NCBI RefSeq assembly: GCF_006345805.1
Contig: NC_043003.1
Span: 52,576,001-52,640,000 of the forward strand
Direction: 5' to 3'
DNA length: 64,000 bases
Source of the DNA: Octopus sinensis
Lineage: Eukaryota
Each line of letters begins with the position of its first letter. The first letter of the stretch is position 1. Below, in pieces: positions 5,926 through 64,000 of this stretch. Position numbers and translations under genes: made by a program. Under the pieces are notes generated by a model, which ran no database searches, was not told the DNA's origin, and worked only from the letters and a program-made list of their open reading frames with translations.

Positions 5926-6541
5926 AATGATAAAAAAGATATATCATACTTTGCATCTAACACTTACAATTTGATATAGTTGGCCTAATGCTTTTCTTTC
6001 TTTGAACATTAACAAATGCAGTGTCAAAGATTTTAATTGAAAATTCTGATAGTCATTTAAATGAATAAAAATGAAATATTCAGGATGAGCAGAACTGAAA
6101 GATTACAAATTGAGAATGGTTTAAAAGAGTTGCTATGTGTGTTGACATCATTGCATTAAGCTCAGTTTTCCATGCTTGAATGGGTTGAGCAGATTATCTG
6201 AAGCAGAATTTTATGGGTTGATGCCCTCTTGTCACCAACCATTTTAGCAGCCGCTTACAACATGTAGGGGCACAGTGTATCTATTCTAAAAACCAGGCTA
6301 TACATGCCATAATTGCGTAAAAGAGTATATTCAATAATTGAGAAGTTATTTGTAAACAAACCTTTCCAAGTTTTAAAAATTAATTTTGAGACTCTACTGG
6401 AGCCATTGGTAAATCATTGGGGGCAAATGTTTGATCTATGTTTGTTCAAGGATTTAGAATATTGGAACAGAAGACACAAATCAGCAAAAAATACATGAAC
6501 ACAATCTGACAATAATTTATTACAGAAGAATTATAACTCAC

Positions 6542-6670
6542 CTTCCACCAAATAAAGTAGGTAAAGTCACTTCATATGCAGCTAGTTTCCAGATAACCCA
6601 GCGGTAATGATTAAAGAACCAGGCTCTAGATATCAGATTAGGATCCACAGATTCAATTGTTAAGAATGAT
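6542..6670 (-). CDS. BRCA2: BRCA2 helical-domain exon (129 bp, phase 2 to 2), counterpart of the 5' part of human exon 17
   Basis: Translates RSFLTIESVDPNLISRAWFFNHYRWVIWKLAAYEVTLPTLFGG, containing the diagnostic VDPxLISxxWxxNHYRWxIWKLAAxE motif. Acceptor TTTTTGCATTCAG|, donor AAG|GTGAGT. Confidence 0.96.
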
Positions 6671-23786: not shown

Positions 23787-24025
23787 TATGATGGATTTCT
23801 CTCACTATTCATTTGCTAAATCCATTCACAGAGAGTCATTTTTTCAACGTATCATGCAGTGGCATTAAACCCAAAACTACATGGTTGTAAAGCGAACTTC
23901 TCAATCATAGAGCCATGTGTATTTATGTATATGTTTTGTAAATACAACTAAAAAGGGAATGAAATAGGTTCAACTTTGCCACAGAAGAAATAACAATCAA
24001 GAAATGAAAATAACGAAACATTCAC

Positions 24026-24204
24026 CTAAAGAATTCTTTTTTGCCAGCACTTCCGGAGTCATTGGGTACCAATAATGCACCATCACCAATAACAAATTTA
24101 TCAAAGTAGCTAATATCGTAGAAGTCAGACAGTTGAAAATGATAATTCTCCGCATTTGTAGAGTTGATGTTTAAAACACTTTGTCGTACACCAAAAGCAA
24201 AGAG
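24026..24204 (-). CDS. BRCA2: BRCA2 helical-domain exon (179 bp, phase 0 to 2), counterpart of human exon 16
   Basis: Translates LFAFGVRQSVLNINSTNAENYHFQLSDFYDISYFDKFVIGDGALLVPNDSGSAGKKEFFR, aligning with human LYTYGV...INSKNAESFQF...[22 protein letters not shown] (from memory). Canonical AG/GT boundaries. Not in the ORF track. Confidence 0.95.
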
Positions 24205-25296
24205 CTGTAAAGTAAGAAATTGAAAAGTTAGAAGTCAATGCATTTTAGAGAAATTATACGTGTATGACTGAGTGGAATGTAATGCTTAGCAATAGATGAT
24301 AACAAAGAATAAGGGAGAACTCAATAATGCATAAGAGTATATTGTATTTGATGGCATAAAAGACACACAGGCATATAAGACACATTCCAAATTAAGTGGT
24401 GCATATTCAGGAAATGCTTTTTGTGCATTGAAGCCTATGGAGACCCAGCTTTGCATATAGGACTCTGAGTGAATTTTTCGGAAACAGTTTTTGAGAAAAA
24501 AAAAAGTACATCTTGTATGTTATAAAATACAGTATATGTTGCGACAGAAGAAGATATGCAAGAGTTTCACTATGTTAAAGTTTCTATGAATTGAATTGCA
24601 CAATCAGAGTAATCTTTCCAAATACATGAATCTTATAGTGAATACTACATGGTCATTATCTCTATACTGCTGCCTTGAATGATAACATTCCTTATCGTAT
24701 ACATAACATCATAATGTGTAGATGGTACTCCTTGGAATTTATGTTATAATTATCTCTGTTGAGCAGAGCAAGAACTATCTAAAGCTTTACTATATAATGG
24801 GTAGATATTCAGTCACACATTGTGATACTTTTGGCAAGTGTCTGCTATAGTAGACAGACATATTGTATATATGCATATCTATCTGTCTGCCTGCATCTCT
24901 CTCTCTATATATATATGAATGTGTAGATACATAGCCAGATGTACACACACACACACACATATGTATAGCTATCAAAGACTTGTGGTCTACAGGTACAGAT
25001 GTGGCTGTGTAGTAAGAAGTTTACTTCCCAATCACATGATTTCAGGTTCAGTCTCAATGCACGGTTCTTTGGACAAGTGTCTTCTAGAATAGACACACAC
25101 ACACATGCACGCGTACACACACATGCATGCACACGCGCACTCATACACACACACGCACTCGTGAAGTTTTGGTATCCAGAAGACCCAAAATGGCAGGTAA
25201 TGCTATGTAAGTGCTAAGGAAGGACTGTAGTTAGACTCCTAATTTGATAATAGTATAAGTGAGGAGTCTAGTGTGGGTCATGAGTGAGCATGTATA

Positions 25297-26109: not shown

Positions 26110-26353
26110 ACACACACACACAAGCATATACCTATCTAGTTAATGTATACAACACAATATTTGTTACTATTTTAGATTCTCTGAATAAAAAAAAACTTTC
26201 TTTAGAATAAAATGAGCATTAAATGAAGAGCCAGCACTTCAACATATCAACAGAAGAGAATATGTTTATAACTTAATGATAGAAAGATGTTGCATGAAAA
26301 GTATTATATGTTAAAGTTTTTAAGCTGACAAAAGAAAAATTATTTCAACTAAC

Positions 26354-27290
26354 CTGCTGATGTGAATATTGAACAAAAGAAGTGTCTTTTAAGAAGTCCA
26401 CAATCTTATGTTGTCTTTCCGATTGTTTTTGGGACATTAATAAACCAATGTTGGGTTGGATATTTTTCTGCTTTTTCTTTATTATTATAGCATCTTGTTC
26501 ACATCGAGCCTTTTGAAAGCTAATTAAATTTTCAGATTTGGAAAATTCTGAATTCTTGTTTTCAACGTTGGAAGCTACAGTGGAAGACAAGAGAGATGGA
26601 TCATTTTTTTCAGGATTTATATCACCACTATTAATATTCCAATGAATTTTGTGATCTTTTATAGGTAATTCCTTACTTTTATTTTTCTGATGACAAGGTT
26701 TACTAAGTCCAGTTTCTGAATTTTCTAGACTGTTTTGAGGGTAATTAGGATTTTGCTTTTCATGGTACAAAGAAGCTGGATTTGTTTTTCTCATTTCAGT
26801 ACCTTCAAAACTTTTTGAGGCTAAACGTTTTCTTGTTATTTCATTAATATTACATGGAATTACATTTTCAGGTTTCTTTTTTCCAGTTGTATTTGATGAT
26901 AGATCTTGACAAGAAAATGATTTGGAAGATTTTATATAAGGCAATGTAACTTTGTCTGCAGCTGTATCACCAGAAACTTCCGAATATTCAATATCTGATG
27001 CATCACTTTTGTCAGAACTTAGTGTTGTACTCATGTCTGTTGGAAGTGATTTGAAATTACTACTGTTATTTGAACAAATGCTTTCTCTAGAACATGATGT
27101 GCAAGCTGAAGGTTGACAACCTTTAAATATTGGTTTGTTCATTGATTCTTTATCTTTATTGTCCAAGATCGATCTTGCTTTAATATGTCTTTTACTGTCT
27201 GGCAGTGAAATGCCTGTTTTACGATAAGGAGTTCTGAAGTCAGATATTTTTGTGTTCTGTGCTATGATAGCAGTAGATTTCACAGAATGG
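26354..27290 (-). CDS. BRCA2: BRCA2 exon (937 bp, phase 2 to 0), counterpart of human exons 14-15
   Basis: Long open frame; acceptor CTTGTCTTTTCAG|, donor CAG|GTTAGT. C-terminal ARCEQDAIIIKKKQKNIQPNIGLL...YSHQQ resembles the start of the helical domain (human ...IKKKQRQRVFPQPGSL...CSHKQ, from memory). Confidence 0.85.
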
Positions 27291-28407
27291 CTGAAAAGAC
27301 AAGTGTAATTCATATATGATACTTTACAATAACTTTTTAGTAATTTAAGGTAATTTAAATAATTTTAATCAGGAAAAAATTCCATGTAGAGCTTTTCATA
27401 ATTTTTAGCATGCTTAATAACTTAATTACTATTATTTTATTAGTAATGAAAGAAGCTTACAAAATCCATACTTTGTGTTATTTGAAGTACAACCATAGAA
27501 AAATACCAAGGCATACCTGTTGCATGAAAACTGAATAGCAGAGAGGTAGCCAATGTACTTAACACATAAAGCACGATTGGCCATGATTGTGGCCATCAGG
27601 CACTTGTCGACAGACCATAATCATGGCCCAGATAGATGCATTTAATTTATGGGCATTTATTGGGGTCTACTGTCACTCAAACGTACCAATACCCACCAGA
27701 ATGCAAGATGACTATTAGTTCAACTATTATATACTAAGAAGATATTTTAACTATTTTTTTGTGTTTTCATGTGTGCATGGTAGTCTCATTTTCATAAAAT
27801 GTGTTCAGCAGTCCATGCTATGTAAATGCAAATTCCAATGCTTTATGGGTTAACAGAATAATCCAAGAAATTTTAATAAATTAAAATAACACACTGGTTG
27901 ACAAGAATAATCCTTATCTGAATTACTAATTCTGGTAAAAAGGGTAGGGGTCATAAATTTTAATTAATGAAAGTTATCTAGGCATGGTTGTATGGTAAGA
28001 AGTTTGCTCTTGTTGGAGTGTTGGGTGGTTTGGTGGTAGTGGTGGTCAACTGAGGTCCATCAATTGTAGCAATCATGTGTGCGAGGGTATATAGCTCAGC
28101 TATGTCTGTAGCCATGACAACTGTTGCACTATTTCCTGTGCCACACTTAAAAAATATTGTTGCTCAACCACTGCAGCTTGTACTGCATCTGTATATAACT
28201 TCTGTCTGGCATCCTTTTCTGCAGGTTTGAGCTGGGATATAGATTTTTGCAGGTGTGGTTGCTTCTTTCATTGGGTGAGTGATGGATTTTGCTCCAGCGC
28301 TGGATGTGCAAAGTGGCAGTTTGTCTCACTCCTTGTATGCCAGCAGACACCTCTTTTGTGGAACTAGCAGATAGACCTTTTACATATACATACATTCATA
28401 TATATAT

Positions 28408-30997: not shown

Positions 30998-31079
30998 CTC
31001 GTTGTTCCTTGGAAAATGTTTGGTGAAAGTAAGGACTGGAAATTACAGTCCTTCTTATCTGAACTAAAATCATGGAACT
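30998..31079 (-). CDS. BRCA2: Putative BRCA2 exon (82 bp, phase 1 to 2): QFHDFSSDKKDCNFQSLLSPNIFQGTT
   Basis: Acceptor TTGTTTATTTTAG| and donor GAG|GTAAAG; supplies exactly the 1-to-2 phase shift needed between the 36211 donor and the 27290 acceptor. Confidence 0.62.
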
Positions 31080-31259
31080 CTAAAATAAACAAGTGTAGAA
31101 AATGAATAAAAATAAAACTGAAAATTAGTAACAGATCAAAATGTCTGAAAGAAAAGTAGATAGTTATGGATAAAATCTAAGAGAAAGAGGCTGTTTGTAA
31201 AATACTATATACTGTACAAACCAGAATAATTGAATATAAAAACATGAAAAAAAAGTATT

Positions 31260-35900: not shown

Positions 35901-36210
35901 GCTTTAAATATTACATGCTTTAATGCACTAAAAAAATTTTTTTCTTGAATATGCACTTTTGACATTGAAGTGCAACAAATATATCCATGCATCTTTAATG
36001 CCATCAAATAAGGTAATTAGTCCATAATTACTGAAAAACATTGCCACATTTTTTAATAAAGAATACTAAATGGCTGAACAAAGTATTTTCGGAGGTATTA
36101 ATTTATCTGGCTGTCATTATATTCTTTTAATCTATGAATCTTACAGAAGCAATCTTGATTTTAAACACAATTGTAAACATTCACAACAATTAAAAAATGT
36201 ATTTATTTAC

Positions 36211-36291
36211 GGATAGGATCTGTAACCACAGGAAGAATTCTCTGCCGGTCTTCAGTTTCATGTGAAACAGAGGGTTTCCAGATAGCAGAAT
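36211..36291 (-). CDS. BRCA2: Putative BRCA2 exon (81 bp, phase 1 to 1): NSAIWKPSVSHETEDRQRILPVVTDPI
   Basis: Acceptor CATTTTCAG| and donor C|GTAAAT; open frame; continues the phase-1 donor of the BRC exon. Confidence 0.6.
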
Positions 36292-36384
36292 CTGAAAATG
36301 TTTGCATTACATTACTAACTTGTATAATTTGATAAATAAAACCAACAAAAATCACATAAATTTAAATAATTGTTCAAAACATAG

Positions 36385-44112: not shown

Positions 44113-46868
44113 TATAATAATAATAATAATAATAATGAAATTATTGTATACAGTGCTCAGGTGCACCACAACTTGTCAGAAAGTGCATATAAAGTACATG
44201 CAGTAATGTGGAAATGTCTGGAAAGCGAACAATGTATGAGTCAGATACATGCCTGTGTGTGTATGGAGGGGAGAAAATCAAGTGTAGTGTTGGCGAATCT
44301 CAGGAAGCATGGAAGTTTTGAAGGATGCAGTGCTCCGACAACTAACAACTGATGCCGGCAGTTTGTTCCATGCTTCAGCAACTCTCAGCGTGAAAAAATG
44401 TTTCCTGAAGTCATGGGAGCTGTGCTGTTTTCTTACTTTGTAAATATGTCCACGGGTGTTAGATGGGTGGAGTTTGAAAAGGTGCTCAGAGTTATTGTTT
44501 GTACGATGGTTGATAATTTTATGGGTGTCTGCCAAGTCAGCTGCCAGACGTCGGAGTTTCAATGTGTCCATGCCCAGGGAAGTAAGGATATGTTCAGGAT
44601 ATGACAAATGCCTGATGGAGGGTATTCTTTTGATTGCACGTCGCTGAACAGCTTCCAGACGATTGATATCCTGGGCAAGATAGGGGTTCCAGACCGGTGA
44701 TGCAAATTCCAGGTGAGGTCTTACCATAGCTATATAAAGCCGCAGATAGATAGCCGGAGAGCGGCTCACAAAGGATTTGGTGAGTGATGCCAAGACACCC
44801 TCAGCCTTCTTGACAATTTTAGCAATGTGTTTTGTCCAATGCAAATCACTGTCGACAATAACACCCAGGTCACGTTCACATGAAGACTTTTTGAGACTAG
44901 TGTTGTGGAGGGAGTAGGTGGACGCTGGGTTTCTCCTCCCAAAATGCATGGTGGTACATTTGTCCACAGCCAGCTTGAGTTGCCAGTCCATGATCCACTG
45001 CTGCATTGTGTCCAGGTCTGCTTGCAATAGAGATCTATAGTGTACAGGATTTGACCTCTTTATTTCGAGGTACAGCTAGATGTCATCTGCATATTTCAGC
45101 ACTGTGGCATTCTTTAAGTTGGCATCTATGTCATTAACATATGCAACAAATAAAAGGGGGCCAAGAACAGATCCCTGTGGTACACCAGATGTCATCTCAT
45201 AGGGCGAAGAGTGCTGTCCTAGAACTGTGACAACCTCTTTTCGGCTGAAAATAAAGGACTTTAACCAGTTATAGAGTTCGTCTCTTACACCCAACGCAGA
45301 AAGCTTCACCATAAGTCTTTTGTGTGGCACAGAGTTAAAAGCCTTAGCAAAGTCCAGGTAAACAACATCCACCCAGGATCCGCGATCAGTGATTTGGGTA
45401 ACGTCCTCAAGAAACTCGATGAGTTGATTACAGCAGCTGGAGTTAGGAATAAATCCGAATTGTGACGGCTGGATGAGGCTGTGAGACTTCCAGAAGTTCC
45501 AGAGGGTTTCTCTGATACAGGATTCCATCAGTTTGGCGATGCAGCTGGTAAGACTGACGGGGCGATAGTTGACAGGCGATGTGCGGTCGCCTTTTTTGAA
45601 CAGAGGGATGACATTGGCAGTTTTCCACTGTTCTGGAGTAACACCATTGTCAAGACAGAATTGGAAGAATAGAGAAAGTTGGCTTAGAAGAAAGTACCCA
45701 CCGCGTTTGAGAAGTAGGTATGTAACACCATCGAGACCAGGAGAGGCATAATTGCATTTATTCTTTAGGTGGCGTTGCAGCATTGCTGGTGTAAATTGCA
45801 TAGTAGATATAGAGTCCGATGTCAGTGGTGATGAAGATGGAACATTTTGGTCTTCGACAGTAAAGATGCCAGCATAGCATCCAGCAATGATTTCTGCACA
45901 TTCTTCGGGATTGCCAGTAATCTGTCCTGTGTGGGGATTGCGAAGGGGACCAACTGGAGAGTGGGGTCTCTGCTTTGAGTGCACGTACTTCCAGAACACT
46001 TTGCTGTCAGGGTTAGCTGCAATGCGTTGTTCAAATTCAAGCACTGCCTTTTTTGTCACCTGCTTGAGGTGGTTGGCTGACCTATTGTGCTTTTTCCTGT
46101 TGCTCTCTGATTTGTGCAATTTGTATTCCCGTTCAGCATTACGGCGTTCTTTCCTGGCAAGTCGGACTGCTGCAGTCTCCCAAATTGCACTATTGGGTGG
46201 TTTTTTGTGCTTGCGTGGTACTGATGCTGCACATGCTGCCCATATTGAATTCAGAATGTTCTGGAGTATAGTGTCCACATCTCCAGAGGCATAAAATTCG
46301 TGCCAGTTTGGGCGTTGCAGCTCAGTACAATAAGAGCTCCAGTTTGCTTTATTCCAGTCAAAGCGGGCAGTCTGAAGATGGTTGTGTTTTTTGTTACAAC
46401 CAATCAGAGACAAGGCGGCCATGATCATGGAATGATCAGAGTCACCTAAAGGTTCTTCGATAGTGACACTAATGATTGTTTCAGGAGAAGCGGTAAGTAG
46501 CAGATCCAAAGTGTTGTTACCCCTTGTGGGGGAGGTAACAACTTGGGACCAATTTGAATTCAGCACCAGTTCAAGGAAATCGTCTGCACCTTGCGGCCAA
46601 CGGAAGGCCTCCCAGTCAATCTCAGGGAAGTTGAAGTCCCCCGCAATATACACATATGTGGCTGTTTTCATGGCAGCAGCTCTGAGGATATCAAAAAGCT
46701 GTGCGTCTTGGCGATAATTTGGAGGACGGTAAACGACTCCGAGCAGAAGTGTTGACATGGTCATGTGTATATTGCAGAAAAATACCTCCTGCTGAGATTG
46801 GATCAAATCATCACAGGGGATTGCCGATAGACTTGATCGAACATAAATCATCACACCCCCTCCACGGC
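44113..46868 (-). mobile_element. CR1-like LINE, 5'-truncated in the endonuclease domain, ORF2 intact apart from one stop codon
   Basis: AGDFNFPEIDW, PTRGNNTLDL, NYRPVSLTS, YLDFAKAFNSVPH, GVPQGSVLGPLLF, YADDI*LY, VRPHLE, LEAVQRRA; (ATT)n tail. Confidence 0.93.
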
Positions 46869-47022
46869 GATTAATGCGGATTAATGCGACGATTAATTTT
46901 ATTTCTTTATTTTGACAACATAAGTATTCCATTCTATATTAAATAGTCTGGAAATTTATTTCGTTCAAAGGTTTCAATGTAAAAATATTTTTATGCTCTA
47001 CCAAATTATCTCAAACTGAAAC

Positions 47023-49141: not shown

Positions 49142-49517
49142 GGTGTAGGAGTGGCTGTGTGGTTAGTAGCTTGCTTACAAACCACATGGTTCTGGGTTCA
49201 GTCTCACTGCGTGGCACCCTGGGCAAGTGTCTTCTACTATATCCTTGGGCCAACCAAAGCCTTGTGAGTGGATTTGGTAGATGGAAACTGAAAGAAGCCC
49301 GTTGTACATATATATATATATATGTGTGTGTGTGTGTATGTTTGTTCCCTTCAACATCGCTTGACAACTGATGCTGGTGTGTTTACGTCCCCGTAACTTA
49401 ACGGTTCGGCAAAAGAGACTGATAGAATAAGTACTAGGCTTACAGGGGTTGATTTGCTCGACTAAAGGCGGTGCCCCAGCATGGCTACAGTCACATGACT
49501 GATACAAGTAAAAGAGA
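49142..49517 (+). mobile_element. SINE family A, about 60 bp from the BRC exon donor
   Basis: Matches the family consensus. Confidence 0.85.
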
Positions 49518-49576
49518 TATAATTTTAAGGTAAATGTAAAAAAAAAATATAAATTGAAATGAAGATATACACTTAC

Positions 49577-52500
49577 TCGTTTTACTGTTTAACTTTAAAA
49601 GCTTTTGGTCTTCCTGTTGCAAATTTTCAAATATACTTGGATATGGTGGGTCAATCTCATTTTTTTCATAAGCATCGGTAAAATTTCTCTCGATTTCAGA
49701 CTGGTTTGGTTTTACTGATGATATATGACTATGTAACATTTCATGCTTTAATACTTTACTTGCAGAATTCTCTTCATCATTGCTCTTAGAGAGAATCTGT
49801 TTTGCACATTTGATAGAATTCTCTGAAACGCTAACATTTTTACCTAAAGCTGTTTGAAATGCCACAAAATGCCCAGTTTTATTATTCTCTTCATTACAGT
49901 TCTCAGAGAAAATCTGTTTAGCACATTTGACAGACTTCTCTGAAACGGTTACATTTTTACCTAAAGCTGTCTGAAATGCTACAAAACACCCAGCTGTATT
50001 GTCGTGACAAGTGGAGATAGATTTCTCAATTTCTTTTTGTTTAGAGATATGATCTTTTTCAGGAACAGCTTGCCTTGTGTTATTTTTAATAAAATAAAAT
50101 TCCTTTTCCATCTTTTCAACTGCAGATGTCATCGCTAGTTCATCTGAGATATCATCATTCATTTGGTTCTCAACAGGAATATCATCAACATGCTGCATTT
50201 GTTTATTGGTATTATGAAGTTTTATCTCATGTATAGGGAATGCTGATCTTAAAGGTTGGTTTTCATATATTTCCATTGATTGTGCTAATATATCATCAGA
50301 AATTTCAGAATTTTTTGATATTATGCTCTCACAATTCTCTTCTTTTTCATTATGAATGGATACTGATTTTGAATTCTCAGAGGAGCACTTAGATCTTTTG
50401 CAAACTGAGGTAGAGTTTTCATCAGATATTTCTGAAAAGTTTCTTTTTTTACTATCAGATGTTTCAGGTGGATCAAAAGTAGTATCTTCAGAAAAACTTT
50501 TCTGAAGCTCATCTAATAATTGGTCACATTGTTCTGAAATTTCTTCATTTGAAGAAATTACTGATTTCTCTTTCACTAAATCTGACAAAGTGTTACTGAC
50601 AGATGCCATTGTATCTGTTCTAACTTCAGACGAGTTTAAATCAGTAAACAAAAGATCATTTACCACATTTTTCTCAAGAGATTGTTTTATTTCAATCACG
50701 GACTTTTCATTTAATATATTTTCTGTTTTCAAATTAGAATGAGAATTGACAAGTAATTGTGGCCTGTCCTTATTACAAAGCTTTCTATCAGATGCTGAGG
50801 TAGAAGATACTGTCATGTTTGAAGATGAAAATTCATGAGCCTGAAGGCCTGTTGTACCTGGTCCAACAAATTCATTTTCACCTGCCAATAATGCTTGGGT
50901 TTTTGTGTCTTTTTCATCACCAATTATCTTAAAACCATCAGATGGGGAATTTTGAATATTTTCTTCTAACTGTTCATTTGTTATTGTGGTAGACACTCTT
51001 AAATGACCATCACCGTCAATTTTACCATCATCTATAGCTTCAGCTACAGTTACATAATCTTTAATTTCTATAAGATTATCACCCAACTGTCTTTCATTAC
51101 TGATATTTTGTTCCTTTGTTTTATTACCTAGATGTTTCTCTGTTAAATTAATCAATGGAATAGTGCTTTTCAATTCATATTTACCACTAGCTGCCTTTTC
51201 AATCATGTTCTCTGAACATGTACTTTGGTTTTTAAGAAGAGAATTAGTACTAGGTTTCTTTTCTTCACACAATACATGGCAGTCTTTATCATTGAGCTCA
51301 ACATTCTTAATAGTATTGTTACTGAATTTATTTTGAAGTAATGCAGGTTTATTAATTATTCTTGGAGATTTAAATGGACAAAATCTTTTTGGCAATTGTT
51401 TGTCAGAACAAGATTTTATTGAAAGTTTTCTTTTAAGACTTCTACTTTCTTCAAATTTCTTTTTCTTCATATTCTGCATATCCCTAACCAATTCAATAGA
51501 TTCTAAGTCACTGTTTTTTGTAGAATTTAATGCTTCAGAAAATAAATCAGATTTTAGATACTGTGCATTGTCAGTGATGTAGCGTTCAACCTTCTTGAAG
51601 TTTTGCTCATTTATTTGAACTGTTTGCATTTTGGCTGTAGAAAATCCCTGAAATTCCTCAACAGTTTCATCACTCACATCCACTAAATCCTGTGCTTTTT
51701 GTAAGCTCTTTTCATTTATTTGAATCTTCTGCCCTCTAGCTGTAGAAAAACCATGGAATTTCTCAACAGTTTCATCATTCTCATTCAATAAATTTTGTGC
51801 TTTTTTTATGCTTTTTTCGTTTATTTGAATCTTCTGCCCTTTAGCTGTAGAAAATCCTTGGAGTTTCTCAACAGTTTCATCATTATCATACACTAAATGC
51901 TGTGCCTTCTCTAAGCTTTTGTGGTTTAACTGAATCTTTTGCCCTTTAGCTGTAGAAAATCCTTGGAATTCCCCATCAGTTCCATCATTCTCATTCACTA
52001 GATTTTGTACTTTTTGTAAGCTCTTTTGGTTTATTCGAATCTTCTGCCCTCTAGCTGTAGAAAAACCTTGGAGTTTCTCAACAGTTTCCTCACTGTTAAT
52101 TAGTACATTCTGTGCCTTTTCTAAGCTCTTTTGGTTTACTTCAATCTTCTTCCCTTTAGCTGTAGAAAAACCTTGGAGTTTCTCAACAGTTTCCTCACTG
52201 TTAATTAGTACATTCTGTTCCTTTTCTAAGCTCTTTTGGTTTACTTCAATCTTCTTCCCTTTAGCTGTAGAAAAACCTTGGAATTTCTCAACAGTTTCAT
52301 CATTCTCAATCAATAAATTGTGTGCCTTTTGTAAGCTTTTTTGGTTTATCTGAATCTTCTGCCCTTTAGCTGTAGAAAACCCTTGAAATTCCTCAATGGT
52401 TTCATCACAGTCATTCATTAAACTTTGTGCCTTTTGTAAACTTTGTGGGTTTATCGAAATTTTTTGTCCTTTAGCTGTAGAAAAACCTTGGAATTTCTCA

Positions 52501-53438
52501 ACAGTTTCATCATTATCATTCAATAAATTTTGTGCGTTTTGTAAACTTTTTTCATCAATTTGAATCTTCTGCCCTCTTGCTATAGAAAAACCTTGGAATT
52601 TCTCAACAGTTTCATCACTATCATTCAATAAATTTTGTGCTTTTTGTAAGGTTTTTTCATCAATTTGAATCTTCTGCCCTCCTGCTGTAGAAAATCCTTG
52701 GAGTTTTTCAACAGTTTCATCATTACCATACACTAAATTCTGTGCCTTCTCTAAGCTTTTTTGGTTTAACTGAATCTTTTGCCCATTCCCTGTAGAAAAC
52801 CCTTTCTCTTTCACTAAATTTTGTGCCTTTTGTAAGCTTTCTTCATTAATTTGAATCTTCTGCCCCTTGATATCTTGATCATTTTGTTCTACTTTTTCTA
52901 AGATCACTTCTCTCTGACCTGGTTGCTTATTGCTGTCAACTTGTATAATGTCTTTTGACAATTTAGTATTCAATTTATCATTATAACAGTGATAAGAAAT
53001 TTCAGGTATATGCTGAAATGGAATGGTAGTATCATTGAAACTCTCTGAGAAATCTTCTGATGATTGCCAATAGACGATTTGACTGGCTGTAAAGTGATCT
53101 TCAACAGAACCACTGAATTTATGAAAATCTTTTAACTGTTTAGAGTGGGAGGGACGAACATTAGTTGTTTCTGAAACATTTTCACATTGGTTTCCTTCAC
53201 TAGATTTCTTTGTGGCAATACCTGAAGAAAACCCAGCTTGCTTCTGGAGTAAGGAAGATTTATTTTTAGAAGATTGCAATGAATTATACCGAGGTAATAT
53301 GGGGACAGTCTTTTGGATTTTATCAGCTGTTGTTTGCTGCATTGGTTTCTGTTTATCACAAGTTACCGAAGCTATTTGTTGCTTGTTTTTAACATTATCA
53401 GAAGCAGGGAGATTGTCATCTAAATAAATTGGGATATT
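49577..53438 (-). CDS. BRCA2: BRCA2 large BRC-repeat exon (counterpart of human exon 11), about 1287 aa
   Basis: Uninterrupted 3.86-kb frame. Twelve GFSTAxGxKIxIxxxSLxKAxxL repeats and two FQTALGKNVxVSExSxKCAKQI repeats match the BRC FxxA consensus. Donor ACGA|GTAAGT at 49577; acceptors TTTTATTTTAG| at 53438 (phase 0) and TTTATTTAG| at 53419 (phase 1). Confidence 0.93.
51570..52874 (-). repeat. Coding tandem array of 105-bp (35-aa) BRC-like repeats: 12 units plus a leading half unit
   Basis: The TAGAAAA (Phe-Ser) anchor recurs at exact 105-bp steps from about 52792 to about 51637. Confidence 0.95.
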
Positions 53439-54253: not shown

Positions 54254-54287
<34 letters not shown>

Positions 54288-54452: not shown

Positions 54453-54571
54453 AAACAACAAAAGAAACAACAAAAAGAAACAACAAAAAAAGAAACAACA
54501 ATAAAAGAAACAACAAAAAAGATCACTAAAAACCTCAGTATGTGTCCCTATATTTACTACTGAACTCATCT

Positions 54572-58955: not shown

Positions 58956-59038
58956 CTTATTTTTGGATAGGTCAGGAAATGCAGAAAGTTCTTTTATTTG
59001 TGAGATAGTAGAATCCTTCTTGCCTTCTTGTGGATCAT
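58956..59038 (-). CDS. BRCA2: Putative small BRCA2 exon (83 bp, phase 1 to 0): DDPQEGKKDSTISQIKELSAFPDLSKNK
   Basis: Acceptor TAATTTCAG| and donor AAG|GTATTG; open frame; phases join the 63579 donor to the 53438 acceptor. Confidence 0.55.
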
Positions 59039-60414
59039 CTGAAATTATATACATAGCCATATATATATATTTATATATATATAATACAAATAAGAAAATG
59101 GAGAAACAAATTCATCTCGTTCATCAACTTATGGATATTACAATTTTACATTATTTATTAATTAGACAAATGAAAACATCAAAAGCAAACAAAACATTAT
59201 ATAAATCAATGGGTAATATAATAATAAAAATAATACAAATACATATTTTAAAAGTCATATTATAAATGATTGAAATTCATAAACTACTTCTTACAGCTGT
59301 TTCAGCCTATGGTCATATACATAGGCGGATAAACAAAAGAAAAAGGCACGCAACACATTTAGTAAGAGCTACAACATGTATTACTTAAATATGGAGTTGT
59401 TTGAATATAAGTTTCTGATTCTAAGAATGAATGATAAATTCAGTATTTATGGAAGCAAATTATCTAAAAAACTCTCTTCTGAGAAATGATTTAATTAATG
59501 GGATTTTTGTGAGTAGAATGTTACACATATCAGGGGATAAAAAGTGAGTTGAAAATGTCCATGTAGGTACACGCTGCATTGTACTGTTTGAATATAAGTT
59601 TCCGATTCTAAGAATGAATGACAAATTCTGTGTTTATGGGACCAAATTATCCAGAAAGCTCTCTTCTGAGAAATGAACAAAGGCTTTGGTATTGTGGACA
59701 ACAGCAATAGTTTCACTGAAGTTCTCAACAACAAAAGACAACTGGTTCTTGATGTGAAACATTCCTGTTCTATACTAAAGAAAAAATATCTAATTAGAAA
59801 TGGTTTAATATCAAAATTCTGGATTGACTAAAGAAAATATGGACAGGTAAAGTAGTTGAATATATGGTTGTTTTACTCTCTGCTGTGGCAGTAATGGTGT
59901 AATTGAGAATTGAAATAAGATCTCAAAGGCTAACAATCTTTGATTTCTAATACAAATGCAATATTTCCGCGGGGGAGAGAGCAATAGAGGAAGGGAGGGA
60001 GAGAGAGAGAGAGAGAGCAAAAATGTAACTGCGTGTGGATGGAATAAATGAAGAACTGAGCATTTATTTCACCAGTGTAGAAATTTAATGTCACTTATCT
60101 AATTAACACGTGTGATTAGTGAGAATTTGAGCACTGAGCCTTGATGTACTAAACTAGTCACAGCAGAAAAGCCACCTACCCCCTCTTTCCTTAAAGTTAT
60201 GCATTCCTCACACCCCGCTTTGTGTGTGTGTGTGTTGTATCTATGTATTTACAAAAGTATGTATGCAGTGTTGCATGTATATGACAGCTGTAGTAACATT
60301 ACCATCCCATTACCACCACTGTTCTTGCCTTCATTGATATAAGTCATCATCTCTCTGTTACTATCTCCCTCAGACTAATATTTTTTGCAACCTTCTCATT
60401 TTATTAAATAAATC

Positions 60415-63578: not shown

Positions 63579-64000
63579 CTTTCATAGTGTTGTTGGTTTC
63601 AGCAGCACAACTTTCCTCAGGATTGTTGGTTTGGACACCAGCACAACTTTCCACAGAGTTCTTGGTTTCAACAACACAACGTTCCAACGAGGTGCTAGTT
63701 TGAATGGCAGCACTATCTTCCAAAAAATTCTTAGTTTCAACAGTGGCACAACCTTCCACAATGTTGTTGACTGAGACAGCAACAAAACCTACCATAGGAT
63801 TGTAAGTTTGATCAGCAGTACAGCCTTCTGCAGCGTTCTTAGTTTGGACAACACAATCTTCCACAGAAATGTTGGGCTGGACAGCACAATTTTCCATAGT
63901 ATTCTTCAATTGGACAGTATTACTCCCTGCAGTGTTCTTGGTTTGAAAAACGCAGCCTCCAACAGAATTGTCGGTGTTCATAATACAATCTTCAACAGTT
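63579..64000 (-). CDS. BRCA2: Putative upstream BRCA2 exon (5' end outside window) with 11-12-aa Cys-containing repeats
   Basis: Frame is open to the window edge (TVEDCIMNTDNSVGGCVF...ETNNTMK). Donor AAAG|GTAATA at 63579/63578 is phase 1, matching the phase-1 acceptor of the 59038 exon. No sequence homology recognised, so assignment rests on strand, position and phase. Confidence 0.5.

Follow-up and report, generated by a model that had tools for sequence, protein, structure and literature searches.

Can BRC repeats that follow one another without a single intervening residue all be working RAD51-binding motifs, and is such a string peculiar to cephalopods? The question is raised by a stretch of 64,000 nucleotides (nt) from Octopus sinensis (NCBI RefSeq assembly GCF_006345805.1, contig NC_043003.1, positions 52,576,001–52,640,000 of the forward strand), referred to here as the window and numbered from its first letter. 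Its minus strand carries part of the BRCA2 gene, and one large exon of that gene contains twelve BRC units in an uninterrupted array with a period of 105 nt (35 residues). From the conservation of their sequences, it is very probable that these units are bona fide BRC motifs which would bind several RAD51, and possibly DMC1, monomers per BRCA2 molecule. The array is a clear but ordinary example of the copy-number-changing tandem BRC arrays that are the norm among invertebrates, and this wider pattern is more notable than the octopus case.

The gene is a BRCA2 orthologue, as had been proposed in a first, sequence-only reading of the window. The protein encoded by the exon is 84% identical to the breast cancer type 2 susceptibility protein of O. 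bimaculoides (P0001), and the DNA-binding region is 96% identical to that of O. bimaculoides BRCA2. Other BRCA2 proteins are similar at the level of 75% (Argonauta) or 38–40% (Mytilus, Haliotis and a chiton). For the protein segment between the two BRC clusters described below, the identity is 98.8% with O. vulgaris, 91.1% with O. bimaculoides and 45.7% with Argonauta hians, which places the source of the window in the O. vulgaris species group. The annotated protein P0105 (3,187 residues, the longest isoform) contains the open frame of the window exactly, and P0105 and the cluster representative P0018 carry PF09169, PF09103, PF21318 and PF09104, which are the helical and OB-fold domains of BRCA2. 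Further exons of the gene lie in the window (see below). The exon with the repeats is the counterpart of vertebrate exon 11, with an acceptor (...TTTTAG/AAT) at 53438 and a donor (...ACGA/GTAAGT) after 49577.

49577..53438, minus strand: large BRC exon of 3,862 nt (open frame, match to P0105, splice context)

The array is located within an open frame of 1,315 codons (53438..49494). Tandem Repeats Finder describes positions 51610–52804 as a repeat of period 105 with 11.4 copies, 83% matches, 0% indels and a score of 1394. Twelve GFS(T/I)(A/G)xG units are in frame at exact steps of 105 nt (GFS starts at 52802, 52697 ... 51647) and are preceded by a truncated unit. The period equals the length of the motif, which leaves no spacer between the BRC units. 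The units are listed below with their scores against the Pfam model PF00634; B and V denote units of O. bimaculoides and O. vulgaris, respectively.

52803..52883, minus strand: truncated leading BRC unit NDQDIKGQKIQINEESLQKAQNLVKEK (KGQKIQINEESLQKAQNLVKEK at 52868..52803), without the FxxA half, 19.2 bits; compared with P0260 and P0001
52698..52802, minus strand: BRC unit 1 GFSTGNGQKIQLNQKSLEKAQNLVYGNDETVEKLQ, FxxA module FSTG, 24.5 bits; orthologue of B1 and V1
52593..52697, minus strand: BRC unit 2, 25.8 bits; 93% DNA identity with unit 3
52488..52592, minus strand: BRC unit 3 (FSIA), 16.1 bits; duplicate of unit 2
52383..52487, minus strand: BRC unit 4 (SINPQ type), 19.7 bits; orthologue of B3 and V5
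52278..52382, minus strand: BRC unit 5, 26.1 bits; orthologue of B4 and V6
52173..52277, minus strand: BRC unit 6 (KKIEV type), 22.5 bits; 1 nt from unit 7; missing in O. vulgaris and in isoform P0115
52068..52172, minus strand: BRC unit 7 (KKIEV type), 28.7 bits; 35/35 residues identical with V7
51963..52067, minus strand: BRC unit 8, 27.1 bits; PDB alignment to human BRC4 (1N0W)
51858..51962, minus strand: BRC unit 9, 17.6 bits; 92% DNA identity with unit 1; without O. bimaculoides counterpart
51753..51857, minus strand: BRC unit 10, 27.7 bits; DNA 91% and 89% identical to units 5 and 2; without O. bimaculoides counterpart
51648..51752, minus strand: BRC unit 11, 33.8 bits; orthologue of B6 (94%) and V11 (35/35)
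51543..51647, minus strand: BRC unit 12, degenerate terminal unit, GFSTAKMQTVQINEQNFKKVERYITD...; orthologues B7, V12 and A10

The same exon carries two BRCs of a second type (FQTALGK), 556 residues downstream of the array. These repeats (FVAFQTALGKNV...) start at 49985 and 49868 and form a separate two-copy tandem of 117 bp.

49884..49988, minus strand: second-type BRC copy 1 FVAFQTALGKNVTVSEKSVKCAKQIF, 34.8 bits
49767..49871, minus strand: second-type BRC copy 2, 38.7 bits; Tandem Repeats Finder 49767–50000

Against the whole BRC exon, PF00634 gives E = 1.6e-62 over 13 stretches. When units were scored singly against the gathering score of 20.3 bits, eight of the 12 array units passed (22.5–33.8 bits); with the two downstream repeats, ten separate BRCs in the exon exceed this threshold. 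The truncated leading unit covers model positions 10–29 only. Its tail lacks 8 residues (24 nt) that are present in O. vulgaris and O. bimaculoides (KEK versus K[KE]NDETIE[EK]FQ). A GFSSGIA sequence upstream (53214–53234) has no Pfam match and was not counted as an extra BRC. The main points of the sequence-only reading thus stand: twelve spacer-less, in-frame units at exactly 105 bp with a leading half unit, supported by Pfam for the exon as a whole and for eight of the units singly, and at least 14 BRCs in the exon once the two downstream repeats are added. Only its boundary at 51570 was misplaced, as it cuts into unit 12, which reaches 51543.

The public annotation comprises 16 isoforms of the gene (P0018, P0104–P0117), including the full 12-unit protein, and 13 of the 16 differ only by in-frame deletions within the array, mostly of whole 35-residue units; their lengths are 105, 210, 315 and 420 nt, besides 186 and 291 nt. 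These deletions could represent regulated splicing within the exon, with the AG/GT at the unit boundary used as both donor and acceptor, giving BRCA2 proteins with 8–12 BRC units, and in seven isoforms a GT–AG junction can indeed be placed exactly at the unit boundary CAAG/GTTTTT. We regard this as improbable, since five isoforms (P0106, P0109, P0110, P0111 and P0113) have no GT–AG, GC–AG or AT–AC placement and the candidate sites are weak, with GTTTTT donors and purine-rich sequence before the AG. One isoform requires two deletions, P0115 corresponds to the gene minus exactly unit 6, and P0111 and P0113 'restore' the full tail of the leading unit by means of gaps (186 and 291 nt) that are non-canonical. 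Reverse-transcriptase template switching, aligner ambiguity and allelic copy-number differences typically leave gaps of this kind, bordered by direct repeats, which also counts against splicing. The junction sequences suggest that the deletion isoforms have one of these origins, with ambiguity at the level of transcript or aligner, and the 13 'isoforms' that drop whole or partial repeat units, at least five of which cannot result from splicing, should be used with caution.

The FxxA module of human BRC4 plugs into the oligomerization pocket of RAD51. FxxA and LFDE are given as the two defining modules of BRC repeats (PMC9162458); the array units have a counterpart of the first and a possible counterpart of the second. 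A sequence search of the PDB aligned unit 8 over 29 residues with BRC4 of 1N0W, with F, T, A, G, K, I, S, L, K, N and L at the BRC4 positions; the octopus F-S-T-A is placed on F1524..A1527 and L-[LVM]-x-[DE] on L1545-F1546-D1547-E1548 of BRC4. The first module reads FSTA in ten units, FSIA in unit 3 and FSTG in unit 1, with Phe and Ala both kept in 11 of the 12. In the putative LFDE-equivalent module every unit retains the hydrophobic pair, with Leu in nine (Val in units 6 and 7, Tyr in unit 12). For units 1–11 pooled, pS (synonymous) is 0.353 and pN (nonsynonymous) is 0.146, which corresponds to a pN/pS ratio of 0.41. Positions G1, F2, S3, G7, K9, I10 and T30 are invariant in these units, G1 being encoded by three different codons. 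The low ratio and the invariant positions indicate purifying selection on each copy after duplication. Additionally, the C-terminal tail of the unit (D-E-T-V-E-K-F-Q) is conserved, such that nothing is left over as a spacer. It is from the conserved FxxA module, the hydrophobic and acidic residues of the second module and the purifying selection that we infer RAD51 binding. A solenoid fold was also considered and rejected: the PDB search returned only BRC4 peptides and a chance match to 4yxx, a designed toroid with a 35-residue repeat (E = 0.99).

Several observations weigh against this assignment. The Phe of LFDE is never kept in the array units, where it is replaced by Leu, Val, Met or Ile, and units 1, 6, 7 and 11 lack the acidic fourth residue that the other eight have. 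Units 3, 4 and 9 fall slightly under the Pfam cut-off, and the degenerate unit 12 is unmatched by PF00634 when scored singly (it reaches 17.0 bits with an iterated BRC model built from the window units). With linkers of zero length, simultaneous occupancy of all units is not evident. An AlphaFold2 prediction of the array alone has a mean pLDDT (predicted local distance difference test) score of 42 and a weak periodic strand–strand–helix (hairpin-plus-helix) pattern; such a low-confidence pattern would be expected of a string of linear motifs and proves nothing. The unit counts also carry caveats, as the seven units of O. bimaculoides discussed below could be an assembly collapse and the pair of units 6 and 7 could be an assembly or haplotype artefact.

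The loss of the LFDE Phe from every array unit, the fact that the downstream repeats (34.8 and 38.7 bits) outscore all of them and the tolerance of between 7 and 12 units among close species would all fit array units that are drifting relics or that serve another role (binding of DMC1 only, or a structural spacer), with the FQTALGK repeats doing the RAD51 work. The conservation described above makes this very unlikely: the pN/pS ratio of 0.41, the invariant F, G, K and I with synonymous change at conserved codons and the FxxA module kept in 11 of 12 units all speak against it, the tail DETVEKFQ is conserved in a way that is unexpected of a drifting relic, and the array is open and in frame in four octopod species. 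If the units are RAD51-binding BRC motifs, one BRCA2 molecule would bind, hold and deliver several RAD51 (possibly DMC1) monomers.

The array is common to octopods, with 12 units in O. sinensis, 12 in O. vulgaris, seven in O. bimaculoides and about ten in Argonauta, and the position of unit 12 is conserved in all four. Its presence in Argonauta, where the roughly ten GFST units are spaced at 35–77 residues, places its origin before the Octopus/Argonauta split. Among the window units (W1–W12), the DNA identity between units 1–11 is 73–93%, excluding W6 and W7, which differ by 1 nt (99% identity) and are the only near-identical pair. Close pairs are W2/W3 (93%), W1/W9 (92%), W5/W10 (91%) and W2/W10 (89%), and the likeness of the block W1–W2 to W9–W10 (90.5% identity) suggests duplication of a two-unit block. 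The 12 units of O. vulgaris (CAI9725761/2) correspond to those of the window one to one with 33–35 of 35 residues identical, save at V3/V4 and W6/W7: the W3 type is present in two copies in O. vulgaris (V3/V4) and one in the window, and the KKIEV type in one copy versus two. From this comparison, the simplest reading would be an ancestor of the vulgaris group with 11 units and a separate gain of a single unit in each of the two species. In O. bimaculoides, B1 is the counterpart of W1, B2 of W2/3, B3 of W4, B4 of W5, B5 of a hybrid of W6/7 and W8, B6 of W11 and B7 of W12, and W3 lacks a separate counterpart. Thus, W3, W9, W10 and the split between W6/7 and W8 are either younger than the other units or have disappeared from O. 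bimaculoides by loss or collapse. Units resemble their orthologues more closely than their paralogues, which indicates birth and death rather than rapid homogenization. The array would accordingly evolve by gain and loss of in-frame 105-bp units through unequal crossing-over or replication slippage, with units keeping their individual identities across species under purifying selection while the copy number drifts. The copy number of the second cluster changes too, as Argonauta has four FQTALGK copies at 40 residues. Database and motif searches for BRCA2 orthologues of squid, cuttlefish and Nautilus found none.

That the array was wholly or partly over-expanded by misassembly of tandem repeats is highly improbable: there is a precedent in Trypanosoma brucei, for which the reference predicted 15 BRCs and the sequenced strain has 11 per allele (PMC2408642), and W6 differs from W7 by one base, is lacking exactly in isoform P0115 and belongs to a type found as a single unit in O. 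vulgaris, yet the remaining units, at 73–93% DNA identity, are easily assembled uniquely, an independent chromosome-scale assembly of O. vulgaris has 12 units with ten in one-to-one register and the reading frame is intact throughout.

To gauge how widespread such arrays are, the array was searched with phmmer against 1.84 billion cluster representatives (597 matches at E ≤ 1e-3 and 82 at E ≤ 1e-30), of which some matches are named here, and a BRC hidden Markov model (HMM) built iteratively from the window units was run on fetched BRCA2 proteins, with the following results.

Owenia fusiformis (annelid): 38 BRCs, tandem run of 32, period 33 residues
Macrosteles (leafhopper): 26 BRCs, tandem run of 22, period 33 residues
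Ruditapes philippinarum (clam): 23 BRCs, tandem run of 19, period 40 residues
Lytechinus (sea urchin): 24 BRCs, tandem run of 13, period 38 residues
Diploptera: 22 BRCs, tandem run of 18, period 45 residues
Dryococelus: 17 BRCs, tandem run of 15, period 37 residues
Gigantopelta (snail): 22 BRCs, tandem run of 14, period 39–45 residues
Mytilus: 17–22 BRCs, in runs, period 30 residues
Porites (coral): 15 BRCs, tandem run of 10, period 49 residues
Aphids: 10–11 BRCs, tandem run of 10, period 47 residues
Biomphalaria: 11 BRCs, tandem run of 7, period 46 residues
Carpediemonas (protist): 17 BRCs, tandem run of 17, period 33 residues

The periods and the unit sequences differ among these lineages, which implies separate homogenizations or expansions. 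A layout of two clusters, in which GF[ST]TA-type repeats are followed by a spacer of 300–560 residues and then by FQ[TS]A-type repeats, is common to octopods, bivalves, Haliotis, Gigantopelta, a chiton and the brachiopod Lingula (P0020-24, P0265-268). Its distribution suggests an ancient lophotrochozoan arrangement. The layout also recalls the division of human BRCs into two functional classes. Octopods have their tandem run in the first (GFSTA) cluster, and Mytilus, Pecten, Gigantopelta and Haliotis have theirs in the second (FQ[TS]A). As a different cluster has been expanded, the octopod array is a lineage-specific elaboration of an old scaffold and not a unique invention.

These comparisons correct the history proposed in the sequence-only reading. 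An independent and recent cephalopod expansion does not hold as stated, since Octopus and Argonauta share the array and seven units are matched in O. bimaculoides; recency survives for W3, W9, W10, the W6/W7 pair and one O. vulgaris unit and fails for the rest. Nor is the array rare, as had been implied: many invertebrate and protist BRCA2 proteins, those of other molluscs among them, contain compact arrays of 10–32 units. Among molluscs, octopods, bivalves and gastropods do show arrays, but not one and the same array throughout the phylum. A literature search found no paper combining BRC repeats with octopus, mollusc or cephalopod, no comparative survey of BRC repeats and no paper on the compact invertebrate and protist arrays listed above. 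Regular tandem BRC arrays have been described as an oddity of T. brucei (PMC2408642); this no longer holds, as predicted proteins in public databases have them in many invertebrate phyla.

High-avidity or filament-scale binding of RAD51/DMC1, as proposed in the sequence-only reading, is a hypothesis. In some of these proteins the period equals the motif length (35 residues in octopus, 30–33 in mussel, annelid, leafhopper and protist). It is conceivable, if unlikely, that arrays of this kind act differently from dispersed human BRCs, serving as a ruler that aligns RAD51 or DMC1 monomers and pre-forms a filament nucleus; the number of units (7, 11 or 12) would then tune recombination capacity, and such arrays would have evolved repeatedly in invertebrates. 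For octopus biology, BRCA2 is a well-annotated and ordinary DNA-repair gene, and the wider value of the array is comparative: the three Octopus species form a natural series (7, an inferred 11, and 12 reached by two routes) with traceable unit orthology, which could help to examine the influence of BRC number and of linkers of zero length on RAD51 loading.

A conserved motif lies shortly after the array. The pattern K[RG]F.PFK.PR is found in at least ten other invertebrate BRCA2 proteins, and a PDB search with this region gave no match. The motif may resemble F-x-P-P-F-K, the 'PhePP' DMC1-binding motif of human BRCA2.

51360..51389, minus strand: motif KRFCPFKSPR

Other exons of the gene were located by tblastn.

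63580..63999, minus strand: upstream coding exon, running off the window end (tblastn of P0018, 100% identity)
58956..59045, minus strand: upstream exon
36209..36307, minus strand: downstream exon
31000..31083, minus strand: downstream exon
26279..27292, minus strand: downstream exon of about 1 kb
24025..24222, minus strand: downstream exon
6541..6660, minus strand: downstream exon, at which the conserved C-terminal region begins; identity with O. bimaculoides 100%

The C-terminal DNA/DSS1-binding region (helical, OB1–OB3) lies mostly beyond the window; its first exon is that at 6541–6660, after which the remainder of the gene continues past the window. The exon at 63580–63999 contains degenerate short repeats (..VQTKN..E.C..) with a self-similarity of 42% over 110 residues (tblastn) and matches no Pfam family. 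In the intron downstream of the BRC exon, a 618-residue open frame on the minus strand (45076–46932) with PF14529 and PF03372 (endonuclease) and PF00078 (reverse transcriptase) is a fragment of a LINE-type (long interspersed nuclear element) retrotransposon, oriented like BRCA2. Upstream of the BRC exon, the intron contains an (ATA)n microsatellite and A-rich tandem repeats of 15–18 bp (54256–54287 and 54453–54520). A 42-residue protein (P0261) from a JGI (Joint Genome Institute) metagenome contig of 3,975 bp shares a 90%-identity cluster with O. vulgaris BRCA2 and probably derives from host DNA present in an environmental or associated sample.

The best-known compact array is that of T. brucei BRCA2 (Hartley & McCulloch, 2008, PMC2408642; Trenaman et al., 2013, PMC3553974), with up to 15 predicted units of 44 residues, 14 of them identical; the number differs among strains, and BRCs outside T. 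brucei were stated to be dispersed and degenerate (PMC2408642). The octopus gene shares with it a head-to-tail array of a dozen or so BRCs in a bona fide BRCA2, the 12 units following one another at constant period without indels. In both, close relatives differ in copy number (Octopus species have 7 or 12 units, with different single-unit gains) and the reference assembly needs checking. The likeness to T. brucei drawn in the sequence-only reading therefore extends to the constant period and the changing copy number, and ends at the near identity of the units and their absence from close relatives. The T. brucei units are virtually identical, whereas the 35-residue octopus units, of motif length, have 73–93% DNA identity; the T. 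brucei expansion is missing in sister trypanosomes, whereas the octopus array is octopod-wide with stable unit identities. Furthermore, octopus BRCA2 has a second, distant BRC cluster, unlike T. brucei.

A parallel for the mode of change is Drosophila, whose species carry between 3 and 11 BRCs, with 7, 9 or 11 in D. pseudoobscura alone; unequal crossing-over and homoplasy were shown in the BRCs of D. yakuba (Bennett, Mercer & Noor, 2010, PMC2882388). Together with T. brucei (PMC2408642), this provides a precedent for unequal crossing-over as a source of changing BRC numbers. That two Octopus species arrive at 12 units through different duplications is the same phenomenon of homoplasy, although lineage, unit length and sequence differ. 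With human BRCA2, the octopus gene shares the placement of all BRCs (BRC1–BRC8 of human exon 11) in one very large exon, and its unit 8 keeps the FxTA...G.K..I...SL.K..NL of human BRC4. The human repeats, by contrast, are eight, dispersed and strongly diverged, and the Phe of LFDE is replaced in the octopus units. The human-type arrangement of eight dispersed BRCs assumed at the outset is borne out by the iterated HMM, which finds eight repeats in the primate and rabbit proteins at 81–214 residues from start to start.

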